In this document: positions 1 to 24,487 of the stretch, in pieces
Layout of the letters: every line of letters begins with the position of its first letter
Position numbering within the stretch: position 1 is the first letter of the stretch
Assembly (NCBI GenBank): GCA_033442325.1
Contig: JAWQFM010000003.1
Coordinates: 1,456,473-1,520,472 of the forward strand
Direction of reading: 5' to 3'
Source of the DNA: Salpingoeca rosetta
Lineage: Eukaryota; Protista; Choanoflagellata
Length of the DNA stretch: 64,000 nucleotides
Position numbers and translations under genes: made by a program
Notes under the pieces: model-generated
Databases searched by the model: none
The model's input: only the letters and a program-made list of their open reading frames with translations
Told to the model about the DNA's origin: nothing

Positions 1-6188
<6,188 letters not shown>

Positions 6189-7226: not shown

Positions 7227-9157
7227 TCAGCTTGAAGGGAAGAGCGAATCGAATCGCTTCTGGTCCATAATGAGACGCATGATAAACCCATGCTGCGTGT
7301 CGTGTCTAAACCACCAGTCCCGCGTGCGCGTCTGCTTGTTCAGCGCAATCGTCAGGTCACGCACAAGCATCGACTCAATCTCAAGGAAGAATTTGCACGT
7401 CTCCGACTCCTCGATGATGGACAGCAGATCCTCAAAGTCCTGCACAAACGGCGTGTAGGGCTCAGGGAAGCCAAAGTCCGACCCTGTTGTTGTTGTTGTT
7501 GTTGTTGTGCGTATGCGTTCGTGTTTTACGTAAGGAAAAGGGCAAGGGCGCGTGTGAGACGCAGCACAGAGATGAAGAACGTGCTGTGCCTCGCCTTGGC
7601 TTGCGGGCACAGGCATGGACATGCACACACACACTCACACATACTCGCGCATACTCGCACGTGCACGCATGCGCATACACACAAACACAGACGTGCACAT
7701 GCACGCAAAGCGACAACGCACGCGTCTCGAAGGAGCGGCTGATGGTGAGGACGATGCGTTCTGGCGACGCCTTGATGCGGTCAATCACCTCCTGGTGCGA
7801 CAGGCTGCCCACGTCCTCGTTGTTGATCTTGAGAATCTGGTCACCAACACGGAGGTCCGCGTGGAGCGCAGCGCTGTTTGGCAGTACCTTCCCCACCATG
7901 GGCGGTACGGACGAGCCATATCCGCCAACGACCGTGAACCCAAAGCTGCCGCTCAGCCGCTGGAACGTCACAATCTCCACGCGACTGGCGACGGCGATAC
8001 ACTTTGGTGTGTGGCGCAGCGCACGCTGGTACTCCTGCACGAGTTGCATGCGCTGTCGTTGGATGGACGTGAGGGCGGCCTTCCTCTCTGTCAGCGTCTG
8101 CGACTCCTGCTGTAGGATGCTCTCGTACGGCTCAAGCGCCAGCTTCGATCCAATGCTCTCAAGGTGCGTCACGTGCGCCAGGTATGCCTTGGACCGCTGG
8201 TTCAGCAGCTGAATGTGCACCGCCGCTTTTGTCAGGTCTGGATAGAGGCGCATCAGATCGTCTCTCGAGTCTGCGAGGGCCGCCTGCTCGTAGCTGTCAC
8301 GCACGTGGCCGTACCGCGCCAGGGCCAGCCGTCGGTGCTGGTCATACACCTGTATAGCGCATGCAAACACGTGGTGAGTTGCATGCGCGCGCTTTGTATG
8401 GTTGTACTTGTGTGTTTGTGTGTCTGTGTGTTTGTGTGCTTGTGTGGGTGTTTGTGTGTGTGTGCTTGCTTGTATGTGTAGACGTGTTTGTATGTGTTTG
8501 TGCGCAGAGCGCTGGAGGGGGGTCGATGGTGGAATCACGAACACGTTCGCGTGCACTTGTGCACCAGTTTTGGCGTACAATGAGGTCGTCGCGAAGGGTG
8601 CGAGTTGTCACGGAGATGAGGTGCCTCAGGTCTGCAACTGAACGCGAGTATGAACACATGCACGTTGCCCCGATGAGTCCTGTGTGAACAGACAGGGTAC
8701 ACGCAGTCACAACCACCCGAGCACACGCACGTATACACATGTACACGTGTACACAAGCATACACACGCAGATACTACACGTACATGGGACACACGCACAA
8801 TGAATTCACCCCGATACCTTCGTAACTCTGCTGCTCAATCTTCGCTTCGAGGTCGCGCTCCAGGACCAGGCGCACGTGGTCTGGGAACTGGCGAACAAGC
8901 TCAACAACCTCCGTGTGGTCGCAGTTGGACACGTCCCGCCCATTCACTTTCACTGCACGGTTCATGATGGGGGGGGGGGGGCAAAGTGCGATTTGAGGTG
9001 GGCGGCAGGGGTGTTACTTGTGAGGGTGAGGAGGCCAAGGGCGGTGGTGGATGAGTTGGAGGAACTGCACTTAAGTGTCGAGCAAGTCGGTGAACAGACG
9101 CAGGAGAGACCGTGCAGCACGGCACACACACACACACACAAAAAAAAAAGAGTACTC

Positions 9158-9197
<40 letters not shown>

Positions 9198-9560
9198 CAA
9201 GCAAATTCAAGGCAACACGCATACCAATCTTGTCGCCGATGCGCACGAGGCCCTCGTTGTCCACAACGCTCCCGCTCTTGAGGTGGCTGACCCGGTAACA
9301 GTCCGTCGCCTCGTCATATGTGATGGCAAACCCATATGTGCCTGATGGCGGGCGCTGGATTGTGAGCTTCAGCCGTGCAGGCTCCGTGCCCACGCGCTGC
9401 TGCTCGCTGTGTGTGCTGGACCCTGTTGCAGAGCACACGGGAGGGGGGACGTGGGTGGGGAGTTGTGGTTGGCGTAAGGTGGCGAGTACATATCATGTAG
9501 AGGGAAGGAAATAATGGTGGATTGCTTCTGCTGACGATGGACCGCGCAGTGACGACAGAC

Positions 9561-9591
<31 letters not shown>

Positions 9592-9602
9592 ATACACACC
9601 CA

Positions 9603-9679
<77 letters not shown>

Positions 9680-11338
9680 GCGCGCGCGCCTACGCACCGT
9701 CTTCGACGTCCATGGTGCGCTCGATGGAGAAGAGGACGAGCTCGCCTCGCGGGACGCGGCTGAGGAGATCCACCAACATCTCGTGGGTCAGGTGCTTCGT
9801 ATCAACGCCGTTGACCGCCAGCAGGTGGTCCCCCGGCTGCAGCTTGCCGTACGCCGGGCTTGTCTTGAACACGGTGTGGATGAGCATCTTCTCTGGGTAC
9901 ATGCCGGCAACCGTGAACCCAAAGCCACCCTCAACAGGGCGCTTCACCTCGTGTGTCAGGTGCACGTGCTTCTCCTTCCGACTTGTCACAGAAGGACTGC
10001 GTGCAGGCAAGCGCGCAGACCGAAGCGACGCGGACTTGCGTGGGGACGGGCTCTTCGACCCGAGCGAGCGGCTGCGCGAATTGCTCCCGCGCGGGTCAAT
10101 GTATGTCGTGCGCTTGTTCAAATGACTGGGGGTTGGTTGTTTCGGTATGTGTGTGTGTGTGTGTGTGTGCGGGGAGGGGGAGGCAGAGTCACGGCGCGTG
10201 GAGGAGCGAGCGGTGGCTTGTGAGCGAGCGGTGGCGTGTGAGCGAGTGTTTGCTCGACCTACACGCAAGCAAGGATCCTAACCACCTGCACATACACCCA
10301 CGCACTTCACATGCAATCACAAAAGCCCGTGCCAGCAAGGCGGTCAACATACTCAATGTAGTAGGTGCCATGTTCCCTGTCGCGCACCACATCCCACCCG
10401 AACGGCAGGTCTGTTTCGCGGTTGTGACGTACACACGCACAGGCGATCACGTGAGTGTGGCAAGTTGACAGCAGACAGGGCAATCAACAGGGTTAGCAAA
10501 GACGAGATAAGCGCCTACCACTTTCGCTCTGACTGGCTAATCGTTCGATGCGCGGGTCTATCATGTGTGTCATCTGCGTATCTCGACTACACGGCAAAGA
10601 ACGGGGAAGGTGTGTGCGTGTGTGTTGGGGGGGGGGGCGGGAGGAAGAGATAGAGTTGTTGAGTGTAGGCGACGAAAGGGGCACACGCATGCGCACGCAA
10701 GCACACTCATGCACGCGCACGCAAGCACACTCATGAACGCGCACGCGCACACTCATGCACTCTCGCTCACCCATACACACCTGCACTCACACACACACAC
10801 CTGCACACACACACACACATACATACGCTTGCATACTCGCATACCCGCCCCTTCATACACGCACGCACTGCCGTCGAGCTTACTTGAAGAAGCATTCTTC
10901 ACCGGAGGATGTGTATCGTATCTCCCAGCCGGGAGGAAGAGGTCCCAGGTCGCGGTCACGCGAGACCTCTCGCTCAAGATCCCATTGCTCAAGATCCGAG
11001 CGCTGCTGTGCAATCTGGCTGATGCCCTTCTCGAGCTGCTCTGGTGCAAGCCCGCCGACGACGGCGCCGTCCTGACTGTCGTCCAGGTCTTGTTCGTCAG
11101 GGTGGTACACGCCGGAGCTGAGGGATCGGCTGCGCTTTCGACCCAGGCTGCGCAGGCTGCTGAGGCTGCGCGACAGGTTCTTTCGCAACCTGCCCAAGGA
11201 CGAGGATCTTGCGCGCGTGGTGCTCTCCTCTCTGTCCTCTGTCCTCCCACGCCTCGTCTTTGTGCTTTTGCTTCGGAGGCGGTTCCACAACCTCGAGAGC
11301 GAGTTACCCCGCTTCATGCTGCTGTCTTTCCTCGGCAT
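7227..11338 (-). CDS. MAGI-like scaffold: two WW domains, three PDZ domains and a coiled coil, no guanylate kinase domain seen
   Basis: WW1 LGPLPPGWEIRYTSSGEECFFN|RDTQMTHMIDPR; WW2 DLPFGWDVVRDREHGTYYI..HLNKRTTYIDPR; PDZ signatures GGFGFTVAG..LQPGDHLLAVNG, GTYGFAIT..RIGDKI..VNG and GSFGFTVVGG..LRVGDQILKIN. Stop at 7227. An additional 5' exon upstream of 11338 is possible. Confidence 0.85.
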
Positions 11339-12093
11339 CTCGAACTCCTTTTGCTTTGATACCGGCTATCGGAGCAAGAGCGCATGCATGCATGTGCGTG
11401 TGTGCGTACGTGTAAAGTGTGCGTGCATGCGTGCGTGTAAAGTGTGCGTGAGTGAGCTCAAGGGGACACTGGCAGACACGTGCGCAACGCACTCGTCAAG
11501 CGACCAATCTGCGAATGGACTCCAGTCAACGGCAGGCACGATACGGGCGCTCAGGCACGCAAGCAAACGCGCGCACACACACACACACACAACTCACACA
11601 CGTACACACAACTCTCTCTCACACACACACACACAACTCACACACGTACACACATACACACATACACAAAGCCAGCTGCACTACGCACTCCGCTTTAGCG
11701 CTGCAGAAGAGATGAAGGTCTGGTGGTGTCTCCTCTCTTGGGTTCAACGACGAGGTTTTTGTGTTCGCCTGCCTCTCTTTGCCTTTGTGAATTTTTTTTT
11801 ATTTTTGTTTGAATGGCGGCCGAAAATGCGTTGGAATCTTGGCTGATTCGCCCGCTTGTTTTGGTTGTGGCATTTTCGTGCCTTAGTTCTTTCGCTTTTT
11901 GACTGGTGAAGGGAACGACAGCGCAAAGGAGGTCGTTGTGTGTTGTGCGAGGAAGAAAAGTTGTTGGTTGTGTGTGTGTGTGTGTGTGTGCAGGTGTGAT
12001 TGCGCTGCTGGTGGAGCACGGCTGCACGGAGGACGGACGGACGGGACAAGGGCACAGGGCAGACGCATCCGCTGCATGAGCTGATCCCCGACC
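11339..12093. promoter_or_regulatory. Putative bidirectional promoter region between the MAGI-like gene and the SH3/PP1-binding gene
   Basis: Divergent start codons about 750 bp apart; no specific motif identified. Confidence 0.4.
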
Positions 12094-14228
12094 ATGACAA
12101 CACCAAAGTTGTTTCGTGCCATCGCAGACTTTTCGTCTGACGATGCAGAGGATCTCCAGTTCCGGGCTGGTGCCACCATCATTGTCACAGATCAAGGCGA
12201 AGGCAAAGAGTCCTGGTGGTAGGTACACTACAAATGCGTGCGTGTGTGCGTACACGTGCGTGTGCATGTGTGTGTGTGCGCACACGTGCGTGTGCATGTG
12301 TGTGTGTGTTCGTGTGTGTTCGTGCGTGTGCATGTGCGTGTGCACATGCATGTGTATATGTGTGCGTGGCGGAACATGCTACGTCCATGCGATTTGCGTG
12401 ACTTGCGTGACTTGCGTGACTGGCGTGACTGGTGTATTGTGCTTATCGCTGACCCATCCCACCACGCACACACAACACACACATGTTTCTTTTATCCCCT
12501 CCCCATCCTTCTAGGGAGGGTGAGCTCGATGGCAAGAAAGGCACCTTCCCCGGCACGTTTGTTGAGCCGCTGTCCAAGTTTGTGAGGCAAATGGGTGCCC
12601 AGGTAAGCATCAACCACTGGCTGCGCTGCAATGCGTCGCGCAGGAGAGCACACAGTCACAGTCACACACACACACATACACGTGTTCACAGAGGTATACA
12701 CGCACAATCACACACGTGTACACGCACACGCACACGTGTACACGCACACGCACACGCGTAAACACACACGCACACGCGTAAACACACACACACGTGTCCA
12801 TGTGCTCACATGATGATTTTCCATGTCTGTGCCTTGCTGAATGCAGGCGTTCAGTGTTGCAGACAAGGACAAGGAAGAGGAGGAGGAGGACGAGGAAGAA
12901 GAGGAAGAACAAGCAGAACAAGGAGAGAAACAGTCACAGCAAATCAGGCAGTTGCAAGCGAGCAGTCCAACCACTGGCCGCGCAGCCCCGCATGGTGCCG
13001 CTAAGCGTGTCAGGTTTGATCTTGGCTCCTCCACAATGTCGGAGACATATGGCAAGTTTGAATACGACCGTAGTGGCGAGTTCAACCCCGACAGATCACA
13101 CCAGGAATGGCTGCTGGAAGAGGTGCGTCGCAGGGAATGCGTTGCAGCCGACACACAGACAGTGCCACGTGCGCGTACATGACTTGTTCCCACCTGTGTT
13201 TTTTTTTTTTTTTTTGAGCTGGACACGACACGACCATGCTTGCCCATGCCTCCAGCCGTCCACTCATCATCATCATCATTATCGCGTGTTCGCTCCCCAA
13301 TAGGCGGAAGAGAAGCTGCGCATGCTGCGCGACCGCTGGTCATATCTCGAGTCAAAGCTCCCGCGCGGACAGAAGTGCGAGGAACGCATCGCCTATGAAA
13401 GGTCAGTGCACATCTCACACATACATGCTTGCGTGCGCGCGCATGAGCAGGAATGTCAAAGGTGGGCAGAAACGAGACGGTTGCGGCAGTGTGGGTGCGC
13501 CCATGACATACGCTTGCCTTGCTCACACGTGCCTGTTAACGTTGATGGTGAACGTCAGGGAGCAAGAGGAGAAAGAGAGAATACAGAGGGCGGAGGAAGA
13601 GCGGAAGCGACAGCGGCGCCTACAGATGAAGTTGAAGCTGCAACAGGTACACATTCTGCTTGCGACCATGCACGGAGCGCGTATGCTTGCTCGTGCTTGT
13701 GGGCGCACGTGTGCATGTTTATTTGTGGGCGCACGTGCTTTTAAGCGTATGTGTGTGCGTGTGTGCGTGTGTGCGTGTGTGTGCGTGTGCGTGCGATCTG
13801 CCCACGTCGAGTCGAAAGGGCAGCGTGCTCGATGTCAACAGTACTCATGGNNNNNNNNNNNNNNNNNNNNNNNNNNNNNNNNNNNNNNNNNNNNNNNNNN
13901 NNNNNNNNNNNNNNNNNNNNNNNNNNNNNNNNNNNNNNNNNNNNNNNNNNCGCGCAGTGAGCGCTTGCGACGGCTGCAAGAGGCGCGTGCAGCACGCCGC
14001 TCTGGGGAGCAAGGCCAACACGCGGGACTGCCAGGTGCACAGGAGCGAGGGGGCGCTGTTGCTGCAGCACCACAACAGCAGCAGCAGCAGCAGCAACGTG
14101 CTCGCGTGATGTTCCTGCAAGGTGCAGCGAACGACAGGTGTGTGGCTTTGAGTCTTGAAGGAGGAGAGAAGATGTGCTGGCGCGAAAAAGTGATGGTTGA
14201 CACTTCTCCGTGCTCAACAACAAACTTC

Positions 14229-14325
<97 letters not shown>

Positions 14326-14405
14326 TACCCTCTCACTCACATACACACACACGCTCACACACACACGCACACACACACACACACGCACACACACACGCAC
14401 ACGCA

Positions 14406-14437
<32 letters not shown>

Positions 14438-14579
14438 CATATCCAGGGCGCCGCCACCATCGCAGCCCGTGCTGTCACTTGAGCCGACGGACGAGGACGT
14501 GGAGACGGACGATCTGACTGCGACGACGCTCACATTCCACCGCGGGGTATGGTCGCAAGGGCCGCAGACAGAGGCGTGA
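12094..14579 (+). CDS. SH3 domain + neurabin/spinophilin-type PP1-binding module + coiled coil (possibly the 5' part of the downstream PTP gene)
   Basis: MTTPKLFRAIADFSSDDAEDLQFRAGATIIVTDQGEGKESWW|EGELDGKKGTFPGTFVEPL is an SH3 domain. It is followed by an acidic tract, KRVRFDLGSSTMSETYGKFEYDRSGEFNPDRSHQEWLLEE and a charged coiled coil. An N-gap interrupts the gene. TGA at 14577-14579 if unspliced. Confidence 0.8.
13851..13950. other. Assembly gap (100 N)
   Basis: Run of N. Confidence 1.
14229..14323 (+). repeat. (TCTG)n tetranucleotide microsatellite, intronic
   Basis: Directly visible tandem repeat. Confidence 0.95.
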
Positions 14580-15777
14580 TGACACACGCTCCTATGCACA
14601 TAACGCCCAGCCACATCACACACAAACACAGGCACAGACACACAGGCATCACCACATACACCGCTGCACGCATGTACGAGCAGTGTTTGTGTAGTATGGA
14701 TGTGGGTGGGCTTCATACTGCATCCATGGCGTCCTGTTCCCCGTGCGACGGCAACGTGGCCCGCACTTGTCGCTTCTATCACACATCGGGTGCTCCATCC
14801 CCTGTCCACTTTCTGTTCTTGTCGTCGTCTCTCGTGCGTGCGTCTCCCTTTACGTTTTTTTTTTCAACACCGCCACCACTGCAGCCGCGCCATTGTCCCC
14901 CACACCCTGTTCTATTGTCCCTCGTTTCTGACTTTAGGCTTCAGCTGTAATTGCTTGTGCATATATCTGTTTGTCTGTACGTTTGTTTGTGGGGGGTTGC
15001 GAGTGGCATGATCAAGGGTTGTTGTTGACTGGCCCTGCTGTTCGCTTGTTGCGGTCGGTGGTGGTGCAAGCGGGTCGTTGTTGAATATGGCTTTGTAGAT
15101 GAGTTTTGAGTTTGCCCCGCCCCCTTCCCTTTCAGCTGCATTTGTTTTGTTGTTGATTGTCAATGTCCCGACCCCCTCCCCTCCCTCTTTGTTTTCATGT
15201 GCCCTGTTACTGCTGCTGTGCTGTGCTGTGTTCCTACCCCCCCCCCCTCAACCAGCTTCGGTCTTGTTTGGTATTCCTCTGTGTCCTCCCTTGGGGTTGG
15301 GTTTCCTTGCCTGCCTCACTCCACGTCTTCCCTCTTCCCTTCCCCTCCCCCCCCCTTTCCTGCATCTTCTGCCTCTTGCTGGTTGTTCGTTTGCCCGACA
15401 CTATGTGGACGGCGCCACTATTAAACTGGGCGGGGGAGCCAACAATGCACCCATCATAACCTCATTCTTTACTTTCCTTTCCGTTCCGCACAGCGTTTTC
15501 AACCTTGCCTCTCCTCCCCCCGCCCAGGGCCCATATCCACCACCACCACATCCACACACACACCCTCCCCACATCCACACACACACCCTCCCCACATCCA
15601 CACACACACACACACACACACACTCCCCACATCCACACACACACCCACACACACACACACCCACACACACACACACACACGGGCTTGCTGTGTACTGTGG
15701 CGGGGCAGGGCCCAACACGACTTTGAATGTGTGTGATCAGCGAGCAACCACCTCCTTTGTCCTACTTACCCCACTTC

Positions 15778-15854
<77 letters not shown>

Positions 15855-15856
<2 letters not shown>

Positions 15857-16216
15857 CACGGGTTCTGGGCAAGAGAAGGAGGAGGACACGACAGCGCCGG
15901 CTGCAGATGATGCGGGGACACGGGGCGACAGCATCGATGATGACGCAGCGGCTGACACAGCACCAGTCACGCCCGCTGTGAACGGCAGTAACGCGAGCAC
16001 AGCGGCCACGCCTGCCAGCGACACCACGACCGCGACCAACAGCAGCAACACTGATACAGGCGATGGTCGAACGCCGCTCGATGTCGCAATTGATCGACTC
16101 GAGGAGACAATAGCGCAGCTGGCGCGGGAGGACGAGGGCGGCGTGACGGGATTCGCCCGCGAATTCCTCGTGCTCGACCAGCAGGACCACGAGTGAGTGC
16201 GCACACACTGGTGTAT

Positions 16217-16306
<90 letters not shown>

Positions 16307-19300
16307 GATGTGTGTGTGTGGATGTGTGGATGTGTGTGTGTGTGGGGGGGGGGGGAGATGACATGACGAATGTTGTTTTTGTTGAAAAGAGACAAGTGTT
16401 GATTCGTTGTGGCGTATCCTGTGGCGGTGGCTGACCGCTGACGTTTGCCAAAAGTTACGGGCGTTGGATGTGTGTGTGTGTACGTGATTGTGTCAGTGTA
16501 TGCATGCGGCTGTCCTCTTTCATCATGGTATTGACCACGCCCACCACCACTGGCAGAATGTTCCGGCGCCGCAAGACGGAGGCCGGGGAGAAGCGTCGCG
16601 AGCTCAACCGCTACTCGGACATCATTCCATATGATGCAACGCGAGTCATGCTTGGGCCCCAGGACTCATCAGAAAATTACATCAACGCAAGCCACATGCG
16701 GGTACGCAAGGAAGCACGCGTTGTGTGTGCATGTGTGTGCATGTGTGTGCATGTGTGTGCATGTGTGTGCATGTGTGTTGCACCTCTTCCTTTTGCTGTT
16801 TCTCACGCATGTCAACCCAACATCACCTGCATGCCCTCCTCCCTCCCTTCTTACACGCCATCAGAACCTGCTGCCCGGGTCACCGCACTATATCGCTGCG
16901 CAGGGCCCGCTCGAGGGCACCGTCGCACACTTCTGGAAGATGATCGCACAGGTGTGCGCGTGCGTGTGTGTGTGTGTTTTGTGTGTGCGCGCGTGTGTGT
17001 TCGCTGTCGTTGTAACAGTGCCTTTTTTTGACCTGTTGTTCGTGCGGTGTGAGCACATGCCTTTGTAAGCTTCTGCGCGTGGTGCCTGCCTGCTCACGGT
17101 ACTTCCGCCGTTGCTTTTGCCGCTGCAGGAAAAGACGCGTGTGATCATCATGGTGACGAACACAGAGGAGAAGGGGCGACGCAAGTGCGAAAAGTACTGG
17201 CCAGGTGCGTTTTTCCAAGGAGTGTTTTCCTTTTTGCTTGTTTGTGTGCGCGCGTGTGCGTGTGCGCGCGCGCGTTTGCACGTTGCACGCCCACACATGC
17301 ACACGTACAAACGCATGTTACACATGAGCATGCAGCGTTCAGGCTTTGTGTATGTACGCGTGTTTGCTTGTGGGGGCTTGCCTTGCCGTTGAAACAGCAC
17401 CAGATTCACGTCAACTCTCACCTGCTGTGTGGGCATTTCGTCATCAGATCCCGGCCACGTCCTCTCATTCGAGGGCTCGGTCCACGGCCCCGCTGTTCAA
17501 GTGCTCTGCAAGTCCGAAACGCGCGCACAGGCCTGGTGAGCTGCAGTTGTCGTGCACGAGCTCTGCAGTGTGCGTTGGGTTGCGACGAACACACGACAAC
17601 ACAGGAGAACACATCATCAGTGACTGCTTTGCTTGCCATTGTTGTCCTGTTCCTTCTATTCCTTCCATGTAATGCCCACAGCACTCACGCCACCGTCACA
17701 ACACGATCACCACCACCACCACCAACAAATAGGGTGCGTCGCGAGTTTCAAGTGACGCAGGTGCAAGACGGAGAACGGGTGGAGCTGAACGTGTCGCAGC
17801 TGCACTTCACGAGCTGGCCCGACCGCGGTGTACCGCACGACCCCGTCATGTTCCTCAGCTTCCTGCACACGGCCATGGCTGCGCAGAACGCCGCGCACAA
17901 GCAAGCGCTCAGCATGAAGGAGGAGAGCATGCCACCAATAGTCGTGCACTGCAGCGCTGGTGTTGGTCGCACGGGCGTGTTCATCCTCGTCTACTCCATC
18001 CTCACCTACCTCCCATATGTGAACAAGGGCGGGCGGTATGTGCTCAATGTGCGGGAGACAATCCAGCGCATGCGAAAATACAGGCGCTACCTTGTGCAGA
18101 CAGTCGACCAGGTGAGCAACAGAGCGAGCTAACAGGGCCAAACAAGCACGGTCTGTTATAGTGCTAGTGTTGTTGTTTTGTTCGTGTTGTTGCTGCTAGT
18201 GCCGTTGCTTGTTCGCGTGGCTCTGCGTACGCTCCATGCATGTTCACTGTGCTCAATTCTTGTTTCAACTTGATCATTATTATTGCTCTGCCTTGCTTCA
18301 CCTCACCCTCCAACACCACAACGTTCCTGCTGTGTTGCAGTATGTGTTTTGCCACCACACCATCCTGCATGCGACCAAGTTCTATCGTGACGGCAGCAAG
18401 CGTCTCAAGCAGCAGAAGCGAACAACAACAACAACAACCACCGCCGCCGCCGCCACTGCGTCGCCCGCCACAACTGCAGCAGCAGCAGCTGTTGTTTCGT
18501 CCTCGTTGGAGGGCCGTCCCGTCTCTGTTGACGATGGTGCGCCCACACCCCCGTCGTCATCATCGACACCAGCAACAACGCCTGGTGGACACCGCAGATC
18601 ACCGGTCGACGTCTCCGTGGACGCAACGCCCGAAGAAGAACAGGACCAGGAACAGCAACGACAGCAGCAGCAGCAGCGTGCATCGGTTGCGCCGTGGCAC
18701 CACCCTGAGCTGGATCGTCCTCAAGCGGAGGCCGCGATCATGGCCGTTGAGAGCCGCAGTGATGGCCTGTTTCTGTTGTACGGGCACGCCTGTGTTGACG
18801 CAACCAGTAGCGAAGACGCGCGCGTGTCACTCGCCGTGCTTGCAGGCAACGATGTGCATCACATTGAAATCACCCAACACGACAGCGGCTTTGCGCTTGG
18901 CCCGTACGTTGGATAGTGTGTGTGTGTGTGTGAGGTGTGCATGAGAATGTGTGAGCGTGTGTGTGAGCGTGTGTATGTGTCTGCGTGTGTGAGCGTGTGT
19001 GTGTCTGCGTGTGCGAATGTGTGAGTGCGTGTGGAGGTCTCGTTGTGGAAGCATGTTTATGTCTTGTTTGGCGTGTTCAGTCTTGCAACCCAAACTGCAG
19101 CAAGCACCGCTCACGTTGCAGTCCGTGATCCATTGCCATGGCAGGCACACCGCCGAGGACCTTGCATCGTTGGTGCTGCAGCTTGCGCGGGCGGGTATGT
19201 CAGTGCACGTGCCCGCTGCGCTGTCGTTCTTCGTTCCGCACGCGTCCGCCGCACAGGAGGCCGTCATCATTGAGCTGCAGCGGCTGGAGGAGGCGGCCCA

Positions 19301-21183
19301 ACAGCATCAGCAACGACAGCAGCAGCAGCAACAGCAACAGGAGGAGCAACAACGGCAGCACCAAGCGCGGGTCGCGGCGGAGACGAGTTTTTCTCACGTT
19401 GCGCCACCTGTGGGCACACCGGAGCGCGGTGGTTCACGCACGAGCATCACGTCTGCGTCAACCGACGTGTCCATGGAAGGGGATGGTACGCCACGCAAGT
19501 CATCGCTTCGCTCTCGAATGAAAAACTTCAAGAAGAAGCTCACGCCGCGCAAGGTAGCAGCACGGCAGCCATGCAGCTTGCAGCTTGTTGTTGTGATTCA
19601 TGGCTGTGTGCTTATGTGTGTGTATGTCGCGCAACGTGCACGCTTGTTTCGCTCATGCATGTGTGCGTGTGTGTGCTTCATTGAGTGGTTGACACGTACC
19701 TTGTTCTTTGCTCTGTGGGCAGCACGTTGGTGTTTGTTAGGCTACATGATGAGGTAATCTGACATCCGTAACATGATGCTGTGCTATTTTGTTGTCGACT
19801 TCAGAGCAAGGAATTGCGGGAAGCGACAGAAGTGAAGCGAACGCTTCGCATTGCTCAGTTCTCCCCACCCGATCCAAAGGTACCACAAGCAGCGGGCTTT
19901 CAAAATGCCACACCGCGACCTCCTCGTGTTTGGGCGGTGGGGCGTGTTAGTGTGTGAGCACTGTGAGCGCAACCATTTTGCGGTGGTGCCATCCCCCCAT
20001 CTCCAGGCAAACAAACACGCAATACTGCTCACCAGGCTTGCAATGGAACTCACCACCAACATCACACTCCCATCTCTTGTGTGTGTGTGTATTTGTCAGG
20101 TGCTCAGCAGTTCCTTCAAGCGGGGCGGGGATGTGCTTGAACTGTCTGGCAGATCGCACTACCTCACATTCCTCAATGGTGTCTATCGCGAAGTTGAGCG
20201 CTCCCACCGCGGTAACCCCGTCTATAAGCTCATGTACGCGCAGCATGTGTTGTATGTGCGTCAAGTGTGAGTGTGTGTGTGTGTGTGTGATGCGTGTCAT
20301 GTGTGAAAATGTGTGTGTGTGCTTGTGGCTTGCAATTGGCATTTGTTTGTCATTGTGATGTTGTGCGCCAGCAACGTAACACCAACATCGCGGTGCTGAT
20401 CACGGCTTCTCTCACATCTATCCCGCGTTTTGCACCTGTCCGCTCACCCCACCCCCACATCTTTGCGTTCCGAACTCCCTCCCTCCCCCCCCCTCTCTCA
20501 AATAGGGCGCCAATTGATGCCCCACACACGCATCTGCACGGCGAGTATGTGTTTCTGTTCATGGACATTGACGACAAGGCGTGGGTGTTCTTCCTTCCAA
20601 ACGCTGGCCCGGTCGCTTGCTGCGCGGCCATCTCAGGTACGCGCAAGTGTGTGTGTGTGTGTAAGTGTGTGTGTAAGTGTGTGTGTGTGTATGTGTGTGT
20701 ATGTGTGCGTTGAGTAACGGGTGGCTATGAATGAAAGCGTGGCCGTGCTGAGTGAAGGAGAGAGAGAGAGTGTGTGTGTGTGGCTGTGTTGTAATGCTGT
20801 TCAAAGTCATGGCTTGTCGTTTTGCATTCACCCTTGCCTCTCACTCGCCATCTTCCCCTTGTTCCTCCTAATCCTACACCCCACACGTCTCCGCTTGTTT
20901 GTTCCATTCGTCAACTTGTGTGCGCAACAGCGGATCCCGTTGAGACGGACGGCGAGTGGATGATTGTCAACACGCGGAACGAGCTCGTCCCAGATGCAGC
21001 CGTGCACATCTCACGACTCGCAGGTCACCATCATGACCATGGCATTCGAGGCGGCGCTGGCAATTGCACTCTTGCTTGATAGCGATGGTAGTGATGCTGG
21101 TGGTGAACAGTGAGTTATCTGCTCTTTGCACGCTGTCCTCACGAGTATGTATTGTGTGGGATGTATGTGTATGTGCATGTGCA

Positions 21184-21262
<79 letters not shown>

Positions 21263-22143
21263 GTGCATGTGCATGTGTATGTGTATGTGTATGTGTATGT
21301 GTGCGTGTGCGTGGTGCAGGTGTGCCTGAGCGTCGCCATCCAAGCCGGGAAGCAGAGAGCGCAGAGCTCATGAGTTTGCGGGAGGAAGTACAGACGCTTC
21401 GGTGAGAGACTGAGACGAGACAAAGTGGTTCCGAACGCCATTTATCGTGTGTGCTTGTGTGCGTGTGTGTGCGTGTGCGTGTGCGTGTGGTTATGTTTGA
21501 AGAGTGCTGCAGCAAGCTTTAAGCTGCTCGTGTTTATACTTGCTTGCACACGCCCTCAACTGTGATCACACACGTCCTGCACATGTCCCACTTCCCATTT
21601 GGTTTATATGCTGTTGTGAAAAGCGTGCGGCTGAAGGAAGCATCTGAGCGCGAGCACCTCGCGACCAAACTCATCCAGTCTCAGAAGACTGTCAAAGACC
21701 AGCTCTCGCAATCTCAGGTCTGCAGTTGCAACAGCTACATTTGCTGTGTGCGCGCGTGTGTGTGGGTGTTTGTGTGTGTGTGTGTGTGTGTGGTTATGTG
21801 TGTTTGTGTATGTTCGTGTATGTGTGTGTGTGTTTGTGTACTCATCGTGCCCATCGACATCTTGTGGGCGTGTGCGCGTGTGTCTGGCAGCACCGCGAGC
21901 GAGAGCTGGCGATGCGGCTTGTGGAGTTGCAGGAGCTGGTGGCGAGCAAACTCGGCATGGATGACCTTGAGGAACTGCAGGAGGCGGCAGCGAAAGGTAC
22001 GGTGCTTGATAGTGGTGACAGTGACTACAGAGCTGTTTGGAAGCACCGGCGGTCTCACAAGCACGTTAACACACACACCCACACCCACACCCACACCCAC
22101 ACCCACCCACCCACACACACACACACACACCCACACACCCACA

Positions 22144-22201
<58 letters not shown>

Positions 22202-22440
22202 GCACGCACGCTTTGGCTGTGATTGCAGCATCTGGCACGGAGAGTGAATTGCAGCAGCAGTTGCAAGTTGCGGAGGCGAGGATTGAACAGCTCGAGAATG
22301 AACTTGCTCAGGCAGCAGAGGTAGGGTCCCTCTCCCAACCCACAGACACACAGACACACACACACATTCCCACACACACACATACACACACAGACACACG
22401 CATGCACACACGCATGAACACACACACATGCACACACGCA

Positions 22441-22471
<31 letters not shown>

Positions 22472-23442
22472 TCCCACACACACAAACACACACATTCCCA
22501 CACACACATACACACATTCACACACACATGCATCACGCTCACCTTTCGCCCTTGTTTGGTTGGCAGGTTGAGACGAGCCTGCGCGACCAGATCAACCGTC
22601 TTAGTCTAGCGGAGGAAGGCCTCTCCCGTCGCATCGAGCGCCTGGAGATGCTCCTTGACGAGAAGACAGATGCCCTGAACCAGTCCGCATCCAACGAGGA
22701 GGTGCGCTGCGCATGTACACGCGCGCGCACGTGTTATTGTTCGTTCTATTGTTGCGTTTTGTGGATTTTTTTTTGGACTGCTGTTGTTTGTTGTGTAACT
22801 TGGTGTTTCGATGTTGTTGTTCCGAGTTGTTCATGTTTCATTTTCTACATTTCCGACGCGAACGCTCACGTCCCCTCCATCATCACTTGTCTTGCTCTGC
22901 GCCGCTGCGCATCTCCCTCAGTCCCTTGCTCGCGAGCTTGCGTCTGCAAAGGTGCAGATTGCAGAGTTGATGGAAGAAACAAACGCGTTTGCGCAGCCAC
23001 CCACCGCCAGTTTCAAACAGGTTACATGTCGCGTGTTCACGTTTGCCGTGTCGTGTGTATACATATGTGTGTGTGTGCAACACGTTATGTGTCTCAACAC
23101 ACTCCTGCGTCTCGCTGGTGTTTTTGGGTTCCTGTCTTCCTCACGTGTGCGTCGTTTCTGATCTCTCCATGCTGTTGCGCCATGCGCTGCTCTGCGCCTA
23201 CAGGTGTTGGACTTGTCCAACATTGATGAGGAAGACGAAGAAGAGGAAAGCGCCGATGAAGCCACCATCAAAGCACAGCAGTGCGTTGAAGCATGTGTCA
23301 TGCGAGTCCTGAATTTTGCCACGAGACCCCAGCACACGTGCCCATTGTTAACGTTCTTGTACCAGTCACGTTGACCTTTCTCTTGTGATTCTCTGCTCAC
23401 CATGTCCCATTACACACTGCTCGTCCACACTTGCATTGTGGC

Positions 23443-23489
<47 letters not shown>

Positions 23490-23640
23490 GGTTGAGGCAG
23501 CGCGACAGAAGGCCCTCAACGCCGCCAACATCTTCGCTGACGAGAGCGGATTTGCACCGCCGCCAAAGGTGAACAAACGCACATCACCACTGAAATGTGG
23601 GAACAACGCAGACGGCGTGTGTGTGTGTGTATGTGTGTGT

Positions 23641-23673
<33 letters not shown>

Positions 23674-24196
23674 ACAGCTACGGCTGTGAAATGAAGTTAG
23701 GATTGTGGTTTGTCTGATGTTAATGCCTTGGATTCACTCGCTCAAACCCATGATGATGTTTGGCGTTGCGTCGACACAGCCATCGCAAGAGCGGCGGGGA
23801 TTGCCAGCTGGTATCTTGTGGGGGGAGGACAATGCTGATGGCGATGATGACGGTGACACTGCTGGCGCTGTTGACGACGACGACGACGATGATGATGGTG
23901 ATGGTGATGATGACGCACGCACGCGGACGCTTCACCTGGCCGGGTTTGGCGAGTCCATGCTTGGCGGCGACGAAAGTAGCATGATGGACGATGATGATGA
24001 CGACGATGAGGATGACTCGTACATTCCAATTGATGACCAAGAAGAGTACATTGCACTTCAGGATTTTCAAGCCGTTGCTTCAGATGAGCTGTCTTTCTCA
24101 CGGGTATGCGTGCATGTGCTTGTGTGCGCTTGTGTGCGTGTGTCTCTGTGTGTGTGTGTGTGTCTCTGTGTGTGTGTTTGTGTGTGTGTGTGTGTT

Positions 24197-24228
<32 letters not shown>

Positions 24229-24487
24229 CTTGTGTGTGCATGTGTACACGTGGGGCTGCTCATCAGTTGTCGCACCAGCGCATCGTTCAACCCTTCCTCA
24301 GGTTGTTGCCTCATCTCATTCAACTCAACCCCACCTCCAACATGACCACGACCGCAACCATATCACCTCCACCGTTGATCAGGGGCAAACCATCCTCGTG
24401 ACAGGCCGTCAGGGGCAGGACTTCTATGGACGACTGAACGGACGCGAGGGCCGGTTCCCCATGCGCTACGTCGGCACCAAGATGTGA
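15855..24487 (+). CDS. Non-receptor classical protein tyrosine phosphatase: PTP - SH2-like - unknown domain - coiled coil - SH3 (start codon not found)
   Basis: PTP motifs [62 protein letters not shown] and LVQTVDQ|YVF. SH2-like [27 protein letters not shown]. Heptad-rich exons at 21.3-23.0 kb. C-terminal SH3 [19 protein letters not shown]|[16 protein letters not shown] ending TKM* at 24487. Confidence 0.85.
21161..21301 (+). repeat. (ATGTGT)n hexanucleotide microsatellite, intronic
   Basis: Directly visible tandem repeat; it produces spurious MCMC/HIHI ORFs. Confidence 0.95.

Follow-up and report, generated by a model that had tools for sequence, protein, structure and literature searches.

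In the choanoflagellate Salpingoeca rosetta, positions 12094-24487 of the forward strand of a 64,000-nucleotide stretch of contig JAWQFM010000003.1 (the window, whose coordinates are used throughout unless a contig of a relative is named) probably constitute a single gene of 29 exons. Its domains follow one another as an N-terminal SH3 domain, a predicted docking segment for the Ser/Thr phosphatase protein phosphatase 1 (PP1), a coiled coil, a protein tyrosine phosphatase (PTP) domain, a degenerate SH2-like domain, a conserved domain here termed X, a second coiled coil and a C-terminal SH3 domain. The long product would comprise at least 1,556 residues, and a fusion of the SH3/PP1-dock part with the PTP part is the most likely reading of the S. 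rosetta sequence. The modules themselves are already known, and what is new is their architecture. Exons were rebuilt by hand together with scripted splicing, and domains were assigned with Pfam on single exons; the exon layout, the matching frames, the domains present and the fusion seen in two further lineages are direct results of this analysis. The region is eukaryotic in character, with short GT-AG introns rich in (CA)n/(GT)n repeats. An upstream unit of seven exons (12094-12218 through 14447-14546), the sixth of which is partly hidden by an assembly gap, is followed by a downstream PTP unit of 22 exons, which starts at 15855 and remains in frame over 1,236 codons to the stop codon at 24485-24487.

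The two units are separated by intron 7 (14547-15854), which is 1,308 bases long and whose last 75 bases are a (CA)37 repeat adjoining the acceptor. The sequence-only reading had proposed that the two units are joined across this spacer, and scripted splicing showed that the proposed junction keeps the reading frame, with phase 0 both at the donor after 14546 (CAC CGC GGG/gtatgg) and at the acceptor in front of 15855 (cacacag/AGC ACG). On the upstream side, exon 7 (14447-14546) encodes an acidic linker and ends ..TLTFHRG in phase 0, with a gtatgg donor. On the downstream side, exon 8 (15855-16192) encodes an S/T/A/D-rich linker followed by the first PTP helices; its frame is open into the next exon and contains no in-frame ATG, in agreement with the earlier description of a coding exon lacking methionine. 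The claim that 14580-15854 offers no convincing start exon also held, as the only in-frame ATG (15099) opens a low-complexity frame of P, L, T and H that runs through (CA)37. Read-through past 14546 adds VWSQGPQTEA before a stop codon at 14575-14577, exactly the short ending that had been predicted.

Comparison with relatives supports the single chain. The full domain order of the proposed protein was found in Monosiga brevicollis and in a second Monosiga-like lineage (species U), and in both the boundary that would be spliced in S. rosetta lies inside single exons. A search with the PTP catalytic exon returned a partial M. brevicollis model, a Logan contig and marine metagenome contigs. In M. 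brevicollis, homologs of both units adjoin on the same strand at 7703-13258 of locus L021 (CH991546.1, about 1022260-1027815), where the SH3 domain occupies one exon from a conserved start (7703-7921, MTTPQLF..), followed by the dock (8046-8222) and the coiled coil (8343-8635). The fourth exon, within a 380-codon open frame (8608-9747), carries two ERLRRL-type repeats and, after an S/T/P-rich linker, the PTP N-terminus, which passes NRYNDIIPYD and reaches FWQMIIE, and the four exons splice in frame to give 570 residues. The public model of this locus, MONBRDRAFT_15437 (M. brevicollis MX1, partial), is the ortholog of the S. rosetta PTP catalytic exon with 59% identity; it is a one-exon fragment of 185 residues, whereas the real gene has roughly 1,500 codons and the rest of the locus is unannotated.

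With the fused M. brevicollis exon as query, two contigs of species U were recovered, namely a 16.7-kb Joint Genome Institute (JGI) contig (L028) and a Logan contig (L029). Their open frames, of 411 and 525 codons, respectively, begin in the coiled coil or, in L029, at the DRW..KC.ER motif corresponding to exon 4 of S. rosetta; they take in three ERLRRL repeats and the linker and reach into the PTP domain as far as KCEQYWPD. A five-exon model for species U is in frame. The three N-terminal halves are collinear throughout, with the exon 7/8 junction of S. rosetta falling in a disordered linker inside continuous exons of the relatives (exon 8 aligns within single exons of L021 and L028). Both L021 and L028 continue downstream with the SH2-like domain, X, the second coiled coil and the terminal SH3 domain. 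In an AT-rich relative (L022), the exon equivalent to that at 15855 follows an obvious polypyrimidine acceptor (..ttgtctttgtag/AGT ACC) and begins with Ser-Thr, as in S. rosetta; no other contig extends L022 upstream. From these alignments we conclude that the fused chain is ancestral to these lineages and that 15855-16192 is most likely an internal exon.

Several observations nevertheless weigh against a single gene in S. rosetta, and some of them would suit gene fission in this lineage, which is the main rival explanation and which we regard as unlikely. Under fission, the 1.3-kb spacer would have split an ancestral fusion, leaving 12094-14577 as a complete SH3/PP1-dock gene with a 3' untranslated region (UTR) of 0.7-0.9 kb, and a separate PTP gene whose promoter and start would lie within or beyond the spacer. 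The other 26 introns measure 157-364 bases (median 230), so that intron 7 greatly exceeds all of them, with 5.7-fold the median length and 3.6-fold that of the longest. Under position weight matrices derived from the gene's remaining splice sites, the intron 7 donor reaches 4.0 (others 2.0-11.0) and its acceptor 2.5 (others -1.1 to 8.3). Both scores lie inside the range of the other sites, which speaks for the junction, and in the weaker third, which speaks against it; the sites are weak but usable. The in-frame stop ten codons past the donor would likewise suit a gene that ends there. Local synteny reaches the upstream neighbour, so adjacency alone proves little. In addition, the protein collections searched yielded no S. 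rosetta protein that includes exon 3 or exon 8; a search of representative proteins with exon 3 returned only read-through open reading frames (ORFs) of an uncultured marine relative, and a word search with exon 8 gave no match.

The base composition of the spacer is not separable from that of the introns, and, in favour of the junction, a (CA)n repeat immediately 5' of the acceptor is also present at exon 7. The spacer has no Rfam match and no second copy within the window, scans of it for a sigma-70-type promoter and an intrinsic terminator found none, and ten of its ORFs, looked up by exact sequence, have no match on record. Among polyadenylation hexamers, only ATTAAA at 15420 occurs in the spacer, and none is present 3' of the PTP stop codon either; since they are lacking after the PTP stop too, these hexamers are uninformative here.

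Sequencing-run data bear on both readings of the spacer. The run-index search reports the share of sampled sequence words contained in each run, without positions, and a 3' UTR would therefore look the same as an RNA with its start near 15.05 kb, a limit that also tells against the single gene. In seven runs from two studies, 0.48-0.50 of the words sampled from 15855-19560 are present, and a script gave 0.502 as the share expected for words lying wholly in exons. This agreement indicates that the assemblies behave as spliced RNA, in line with the PTP exon model. The corresponding share for 13953-15779, in runs from these two studies, is 0.51-0.57, compared with 0.125 expected from exons alone, which corresponds to about 700-800 extra words in RNA, nearly all from 14547-15779. 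Transcription continuing past exon 7 as far as about 15.25-15.35 kb would give just this share. The spacer is thus not a cleanly removed intron, as much of its 1,308 bases persists in RNA, and the presence of most of the first 700-800 bases of intron 7 in RNA-like assemblies that lack the other introns counts against the fusion and in favour of fission. A low-depth run (X14) points the same way, with 0.46 of the tail/spacer stretch compared with 0.12 of the PTP stretch; it suggests that transcripts ending in the spacer may outnumber those that extend to the PTP exons, and it would also fit two genes.

Under the single-gene reading, the same data would reflect a second, shorter transcript. There is probably an abundant short product ending in QTEA alongside the long one, with ten extra codons and a 3' UTR extending to roughly 15.25-15.35 kb. 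Of the short SH3/dock isoform put forward in the sequence-only reading, the stop codon after QTEA was read directly and the spacer share in RNA fits; its end within the intron, at a putative intronic polyadenylation site, is the part that would follow from the word shares.

Features of the PTP side are harder to reconcile with fission. Exon 8 offers no in-frame ATG. A start at the only upstream in-frame ATG (15099) would require translation of 252 low-complexity codons through (CA)37, where any slip would change the reading frame. A start further on, at ATG 16558, would cost the protein its first PTP helices, and this methionine is missing in M. brevicollis and species U. Moreover, the donor and acceptor phases still match, and L022 has an acceptor rather than a start at the equivalent site. 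A related alternative is very improbable: a separate RNA would encode the PTP from ATG 15099 onwards, exon 8 would reach upstream to about 15.05 kb, and the protein would gain a hydrophobic, proline-rich N-terminal extension. The frame is indeed open from 15099 to 16192, and an RNA of about 15.05-15.78 kb together with exons 6 and 7 would also give a word share near 0.5. However, the stretch is poor in A (6-15%), so that open frames are expected by chance, and the frame crosses dinucleotide microsatellites; L021, L028 and L029 have nothing equivalent to the extension and carry the coiled-coil tail at the same position, and the exact product of the frame is not on record. As a separate observation, the 365-codon ORF at 15099-16196, which passes from the ATG via pyrimidine-rich low-complexity sequence and (CA)37 into the first PTP exon and lacks a counterpart in relatives, is a likely trap for automatic gene callers.

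As the putative PP1-recruiting element, exon 3 (12847-13122) encodes, after an acidic linker, a neurabin/spinophilin-type docking string at about 13003-13122 (KRVRF .. TY..EYDR .. GEFNP .. EW), which is conserved in four choanoflagellate sequences. Neurabin and spinophilin are PP1 partners that use an RVxF-PhiPhi-R-W string (PMC12185105). When the M. brevicollis dock was compared by HMMER with 177,635 PDB sequences, the sole matches were spinophilin (3egg/3egh) and neurabin (3hvq/9gsu), at E-values of about 0.01, over an alignment of 45 residues that contains the RVxF motif, a strand, TY..DYDR and the helix start, with RVxF, TY and YDR at the same spacing. A profile of three species' docks placed the same four chains (3egg_C, 3egh_C, 3hvq_C, 9gsu_C) as the top four in PDB, and two docks out of four, those of M. 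brevicollis and species U, matched the Pfam family PF17817 and no other, below its cut-off. The RVxF motif is present as KRVRF in S. rosetta and as GRVSF, RRLSF and RRVTF in the relatives, aligned to spinophilin RKIHF. R, F, T, YDR, GEFNP and EW are invariant in three aligned dock sequences, and the species U dock retains the arginine and tryptophan with motifs YER and GEFDP. The YDR/YER arginine (aligned to spinophilin YDRR) and the downstream tryptophan are invariant in all four choanoflagellate docks; the EW tryptophan aligns to a spinophilin tyrosine, and the PhiPhi positions vary among species.

The proposal of a PP1 docking site is supported in that the M. brevicollis copy and the three-species profile match the PP1-bound segments; the S. 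rosetta copy gave no hit by itself. It is quite unlikely that the likeness to the neurabin string is confined to sequence and that PP1 is not bound, which would make the N-terminal part just an SH3/coiled-coil adaptor of the PTP. In keeping with that explanation, all spinophilin, neurabin and PF17817 matches are weak (E-values 0.0003-0.08) and below the Pfam cut-off, the docks of S. rosetta and of the uncultured marine relative (relative T) have no PDB or Pfam match when searched alone, and the PhiPhi positions differ between species. On the other hand, the only chains in PDB matched by the M. brevicollis dock are PP1-bound, the key motif residues are invariant in three aligned choanoflagellate sequences, with the arginine and tryptophan kept in species U, and the dock is far better conserved than its flanking linkers. 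We infer, on good grounds, that the dock would bind PP1. The segment resembles neurabin-1/spinophilin (PPP1R9A/B) in its RVxF motif followed by TY-x3-[DE]-Y-D-R at the same spacing, an acidic helix start and a downstream coiled coil. It differs in the lack of an F-actin-binding region and of PDZ and SAM domains, with SH3 upstream and a tyrosine phosphatase downstream, and the similarity is marginal; no exon gave a PDZ profile match, and a coiled coil follows the dock instead. A metagenome scan with the dock profile also returned 14 gut-metagenome loci of 41% identity, which were judged spurious bacterial matches. The fungal PP1 regulators Bud14 and Tea4 combine an SH3 domain and a subsequent RVxF PP1-binding motif in one protein that lacks a PTP domain; no similarity to either surfaced in the representative search with exon 3.

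The PTP domain is catalytically intact by sequence, as had been claimed, with the HC(X5)R loop, the WPD loop, the Q loop (QTVDQ) and an NxxKNRY-type phosphotyrosine loop all present in the spliced translation. Beyond the helices in exon 8, it occupies five exons (16557-16701, 16865-16951, 17129-17204, 17448-17535 and 17733-18111), with 86 bits to Pfam Y_phosphatase (PF00102, cut-off 20.9; E-value 3.9e-24) on 17734-18111 alone and 137.8 bits for the M. brevicollis copy. It shows no special affinity to any one animal subfamily. PTPN11 and PTPN9 were among the best single-domain PDB matches of the M. brevicollis PTP, and the N-terminal helix motif GF..EF..L..Q resembles that of SHP-2. The end of the PTP domain, a T/A/S linker, the SH2-like domain (W-H-H-P .. 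GLFLLYGH ..) and a Q-rich stretch lie in exons 18341-18903 and 19145-19553. The SH2 profile scored 19.5 bits in S. rosetta (E-value 0.0011) and 16 bits in M. brevicollis (E-value 0.013), below the cut-off of 21, and gave no match in relative T or species U. The phosphotyrosine-binding arginine of the FLVRES motif is lacking (FLLYGH in S. rosetta, FCVFGD in T, FLVYTG in U and FLVARE in M. brevicollis), and an AlphaFold2 (AF2) model of the domain, with a predicted local distance difference test (pLDDT) of 46, was unusable, though its order of helices and strands fits SH2. As a cytoplasmic classical PTP with an SH2-type module, the protein resembles SHP-1/SHP-2 (PTPN6, PTPN11). In contrast to these, it has one degenerate SH2-like domain after the PTP rather than two before it, and the SHP proteins lack SH3 domains, a PP1 dock and coiled coils.

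The remaining exons, all on the forward strand, complete the model. Exon 1 (12094-12218) contains the start codon, whose MTTPKLF.. context is kept in three relatives, and the first part of the N-terminal SH3 domain, with an SH3_1 score of 24.6 bits on this exon alone (cut-off 22.9) compared with 40-44 bits for the unsplit M. brevicollis copy. The remainder of the domain is in exon 2 (12515-12602), which covers positions 37-54 of the SH3_2 profile and was matched by tblastn to L001, L021 and L028; between the two exons, 12259-12366 is an intronic GT/CA microsatellite stretch. Exon 4 (13304-13401) carries the LRML.DRW .. KCEER motif conserved in relatives, and exon 5 (13559-13646), aligned with relatives, is a basic/acidic coiled-coil stretch that ends in phase 0. 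Downstream of the SH2-like domain, a linker exon (19805-19879) is followed by three exons for domain X (20100-20233, 20506-20636 and 20931-21023), which show 43-57% identity to L028; by homology, the donor of the first (20233/gtacgc) is better than one at 20266. Domain X is a conserved unit of about 115 residues (20100-21023 in the window, 11624-11971 in L028), and an AF2 model of the L028 copy is all-beta with a pLDDT of 76.5. It has no PDB or Pfam match, and in the ESM Atlas it reaches template modelling (TM) scores of about 0.7 only to unnamed domains of ciliates, diatoms, haptophytes and apicomplexans. The second coiled coil is modelled in frame over eight exons (21320-21401, 21624-21717, 21891-21996, 22229-22320, 22567-22701, 22922-23020, 23204-23280 and 23490-23568) and is collinear with L021 11872-12855 and L028 11567-12457. 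The last two exons (23780-24103 and 24383-24487) encode an acidic stretch and the C-terminal SH3 domain, ending at the stop codon as in L021 and L028; this intron-split domain scored 15.7 bits to SH3_1 in its first half and 19.7 bits to SH3_2 in its second, both below cut-off.

An assembly gap (13851-13950) hides the acceptor and the first part of exon 6. The visible part (13953-14137) encodes an ERLRRLQEAR repeat and a Q run and ends ..GAAND(R) at the donor cag/gtgtgt, whose position matches that in relative T (L001 2175). In a frame test, the phase-0 end of exon 5 could not join the first AG after the gap (13956) in frame, and the post-gap coding frame (RSERLRRLQEAR.., from 13953) extends back into the N run, indicating that exon 6 starts inside or before the gap. 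In L001, a single exon covers the equivalents of exons 4 and 5 and of the post-gap sequence, which a 44-residue linker separates; across the relatives, the gap region corresponds to a linker of 44 residues or more with up to three ERLRRL repeats. Gene order and orientation across the gap are therefore supported by alignment to the collinear relatives (L001, M. brevicollis and species U). The basic helix motif (S/T)R(A/G/S)ERLRRL(A/Q)(A/E)AR(A)A, which has no Pfam match, occurs once after the gap (13953-14000), three times in M. brevicollis (L021 8500-9010) and three times in species U (L028 8990-9330), and further copies may be hidden in the gap.

Around the gene, the minus strand at 1958-4931 carries homologs of the upstream neighbour in M. 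brevicollis, a DUF4550/FLJ43738-like gene that is also on the minus strand there. The downstream tRNA-synthetase neighbour common to M. brevicollis and species U was not found in the window. The contigs of the marine relative end at poly-T downstream. One marine metagenome contig (L002) leaves its five siblings inside a CA microsatellite and enters an unrelated G-patch-like frame at 1422-1892, and its sequence past 1421 is probably an assembly chimera.

PP1 takes its specificity from docking partners, and classical PTPs take theirs from flanking domains. In the proposed mechanism, splicing from 14546 to 15855 would join both halves of the protein over an intron of unusual length whose splice sites are rather weak. 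Where the donor after 14546 is left unused, ten more codons and a stop would follow, and the transcript would end in the intron, yielding a short SH3/dock/coiled-coil protein that may serve as a PP1-targeting subunit without the PTP. In the long form, the dock would hold the PP1 catalytic subunit beside the PTP domain, giving a complex with both Ser/Thr and Tyr phosphatase activity, while the SH3 domains would position the complex and the coiled coils would oligomerise it. A stronger version, which we consider doubtful, would turn the long product into an obligate two-activity phosphatase machine: PP1 tethered near a live PTP would clear both marks in one encounter from SH3-recruited, doubly phosphorylated targets (e.g. 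Thr-x-Tyr activation loops), the weak 14546 donor would set the ratio to the PP1-only subunit, and the neurabin PP1 module would predate animals and have been first used outside a PDZ scaffold.

To our knowledge, no animal tyrosine phosphatase has this build, and we know of no classical PTP with a structured PP1-binding string. A literature search likewise returned no classical PTP with such a string, and the combination was not described there. If the proposed architecture is correct, choanoflagellates would wire Ser/Thr and Tyr dephosphorylation into one polypeptide-centred complex, with bearing on the organisation of phosphotyrosine signalling before animals arose. The PP1-binding module of neurabin and spinophilin, known from synaptic scaffolds of animals, would then also occur in one of their unicellular relatives, and in a different domain context.

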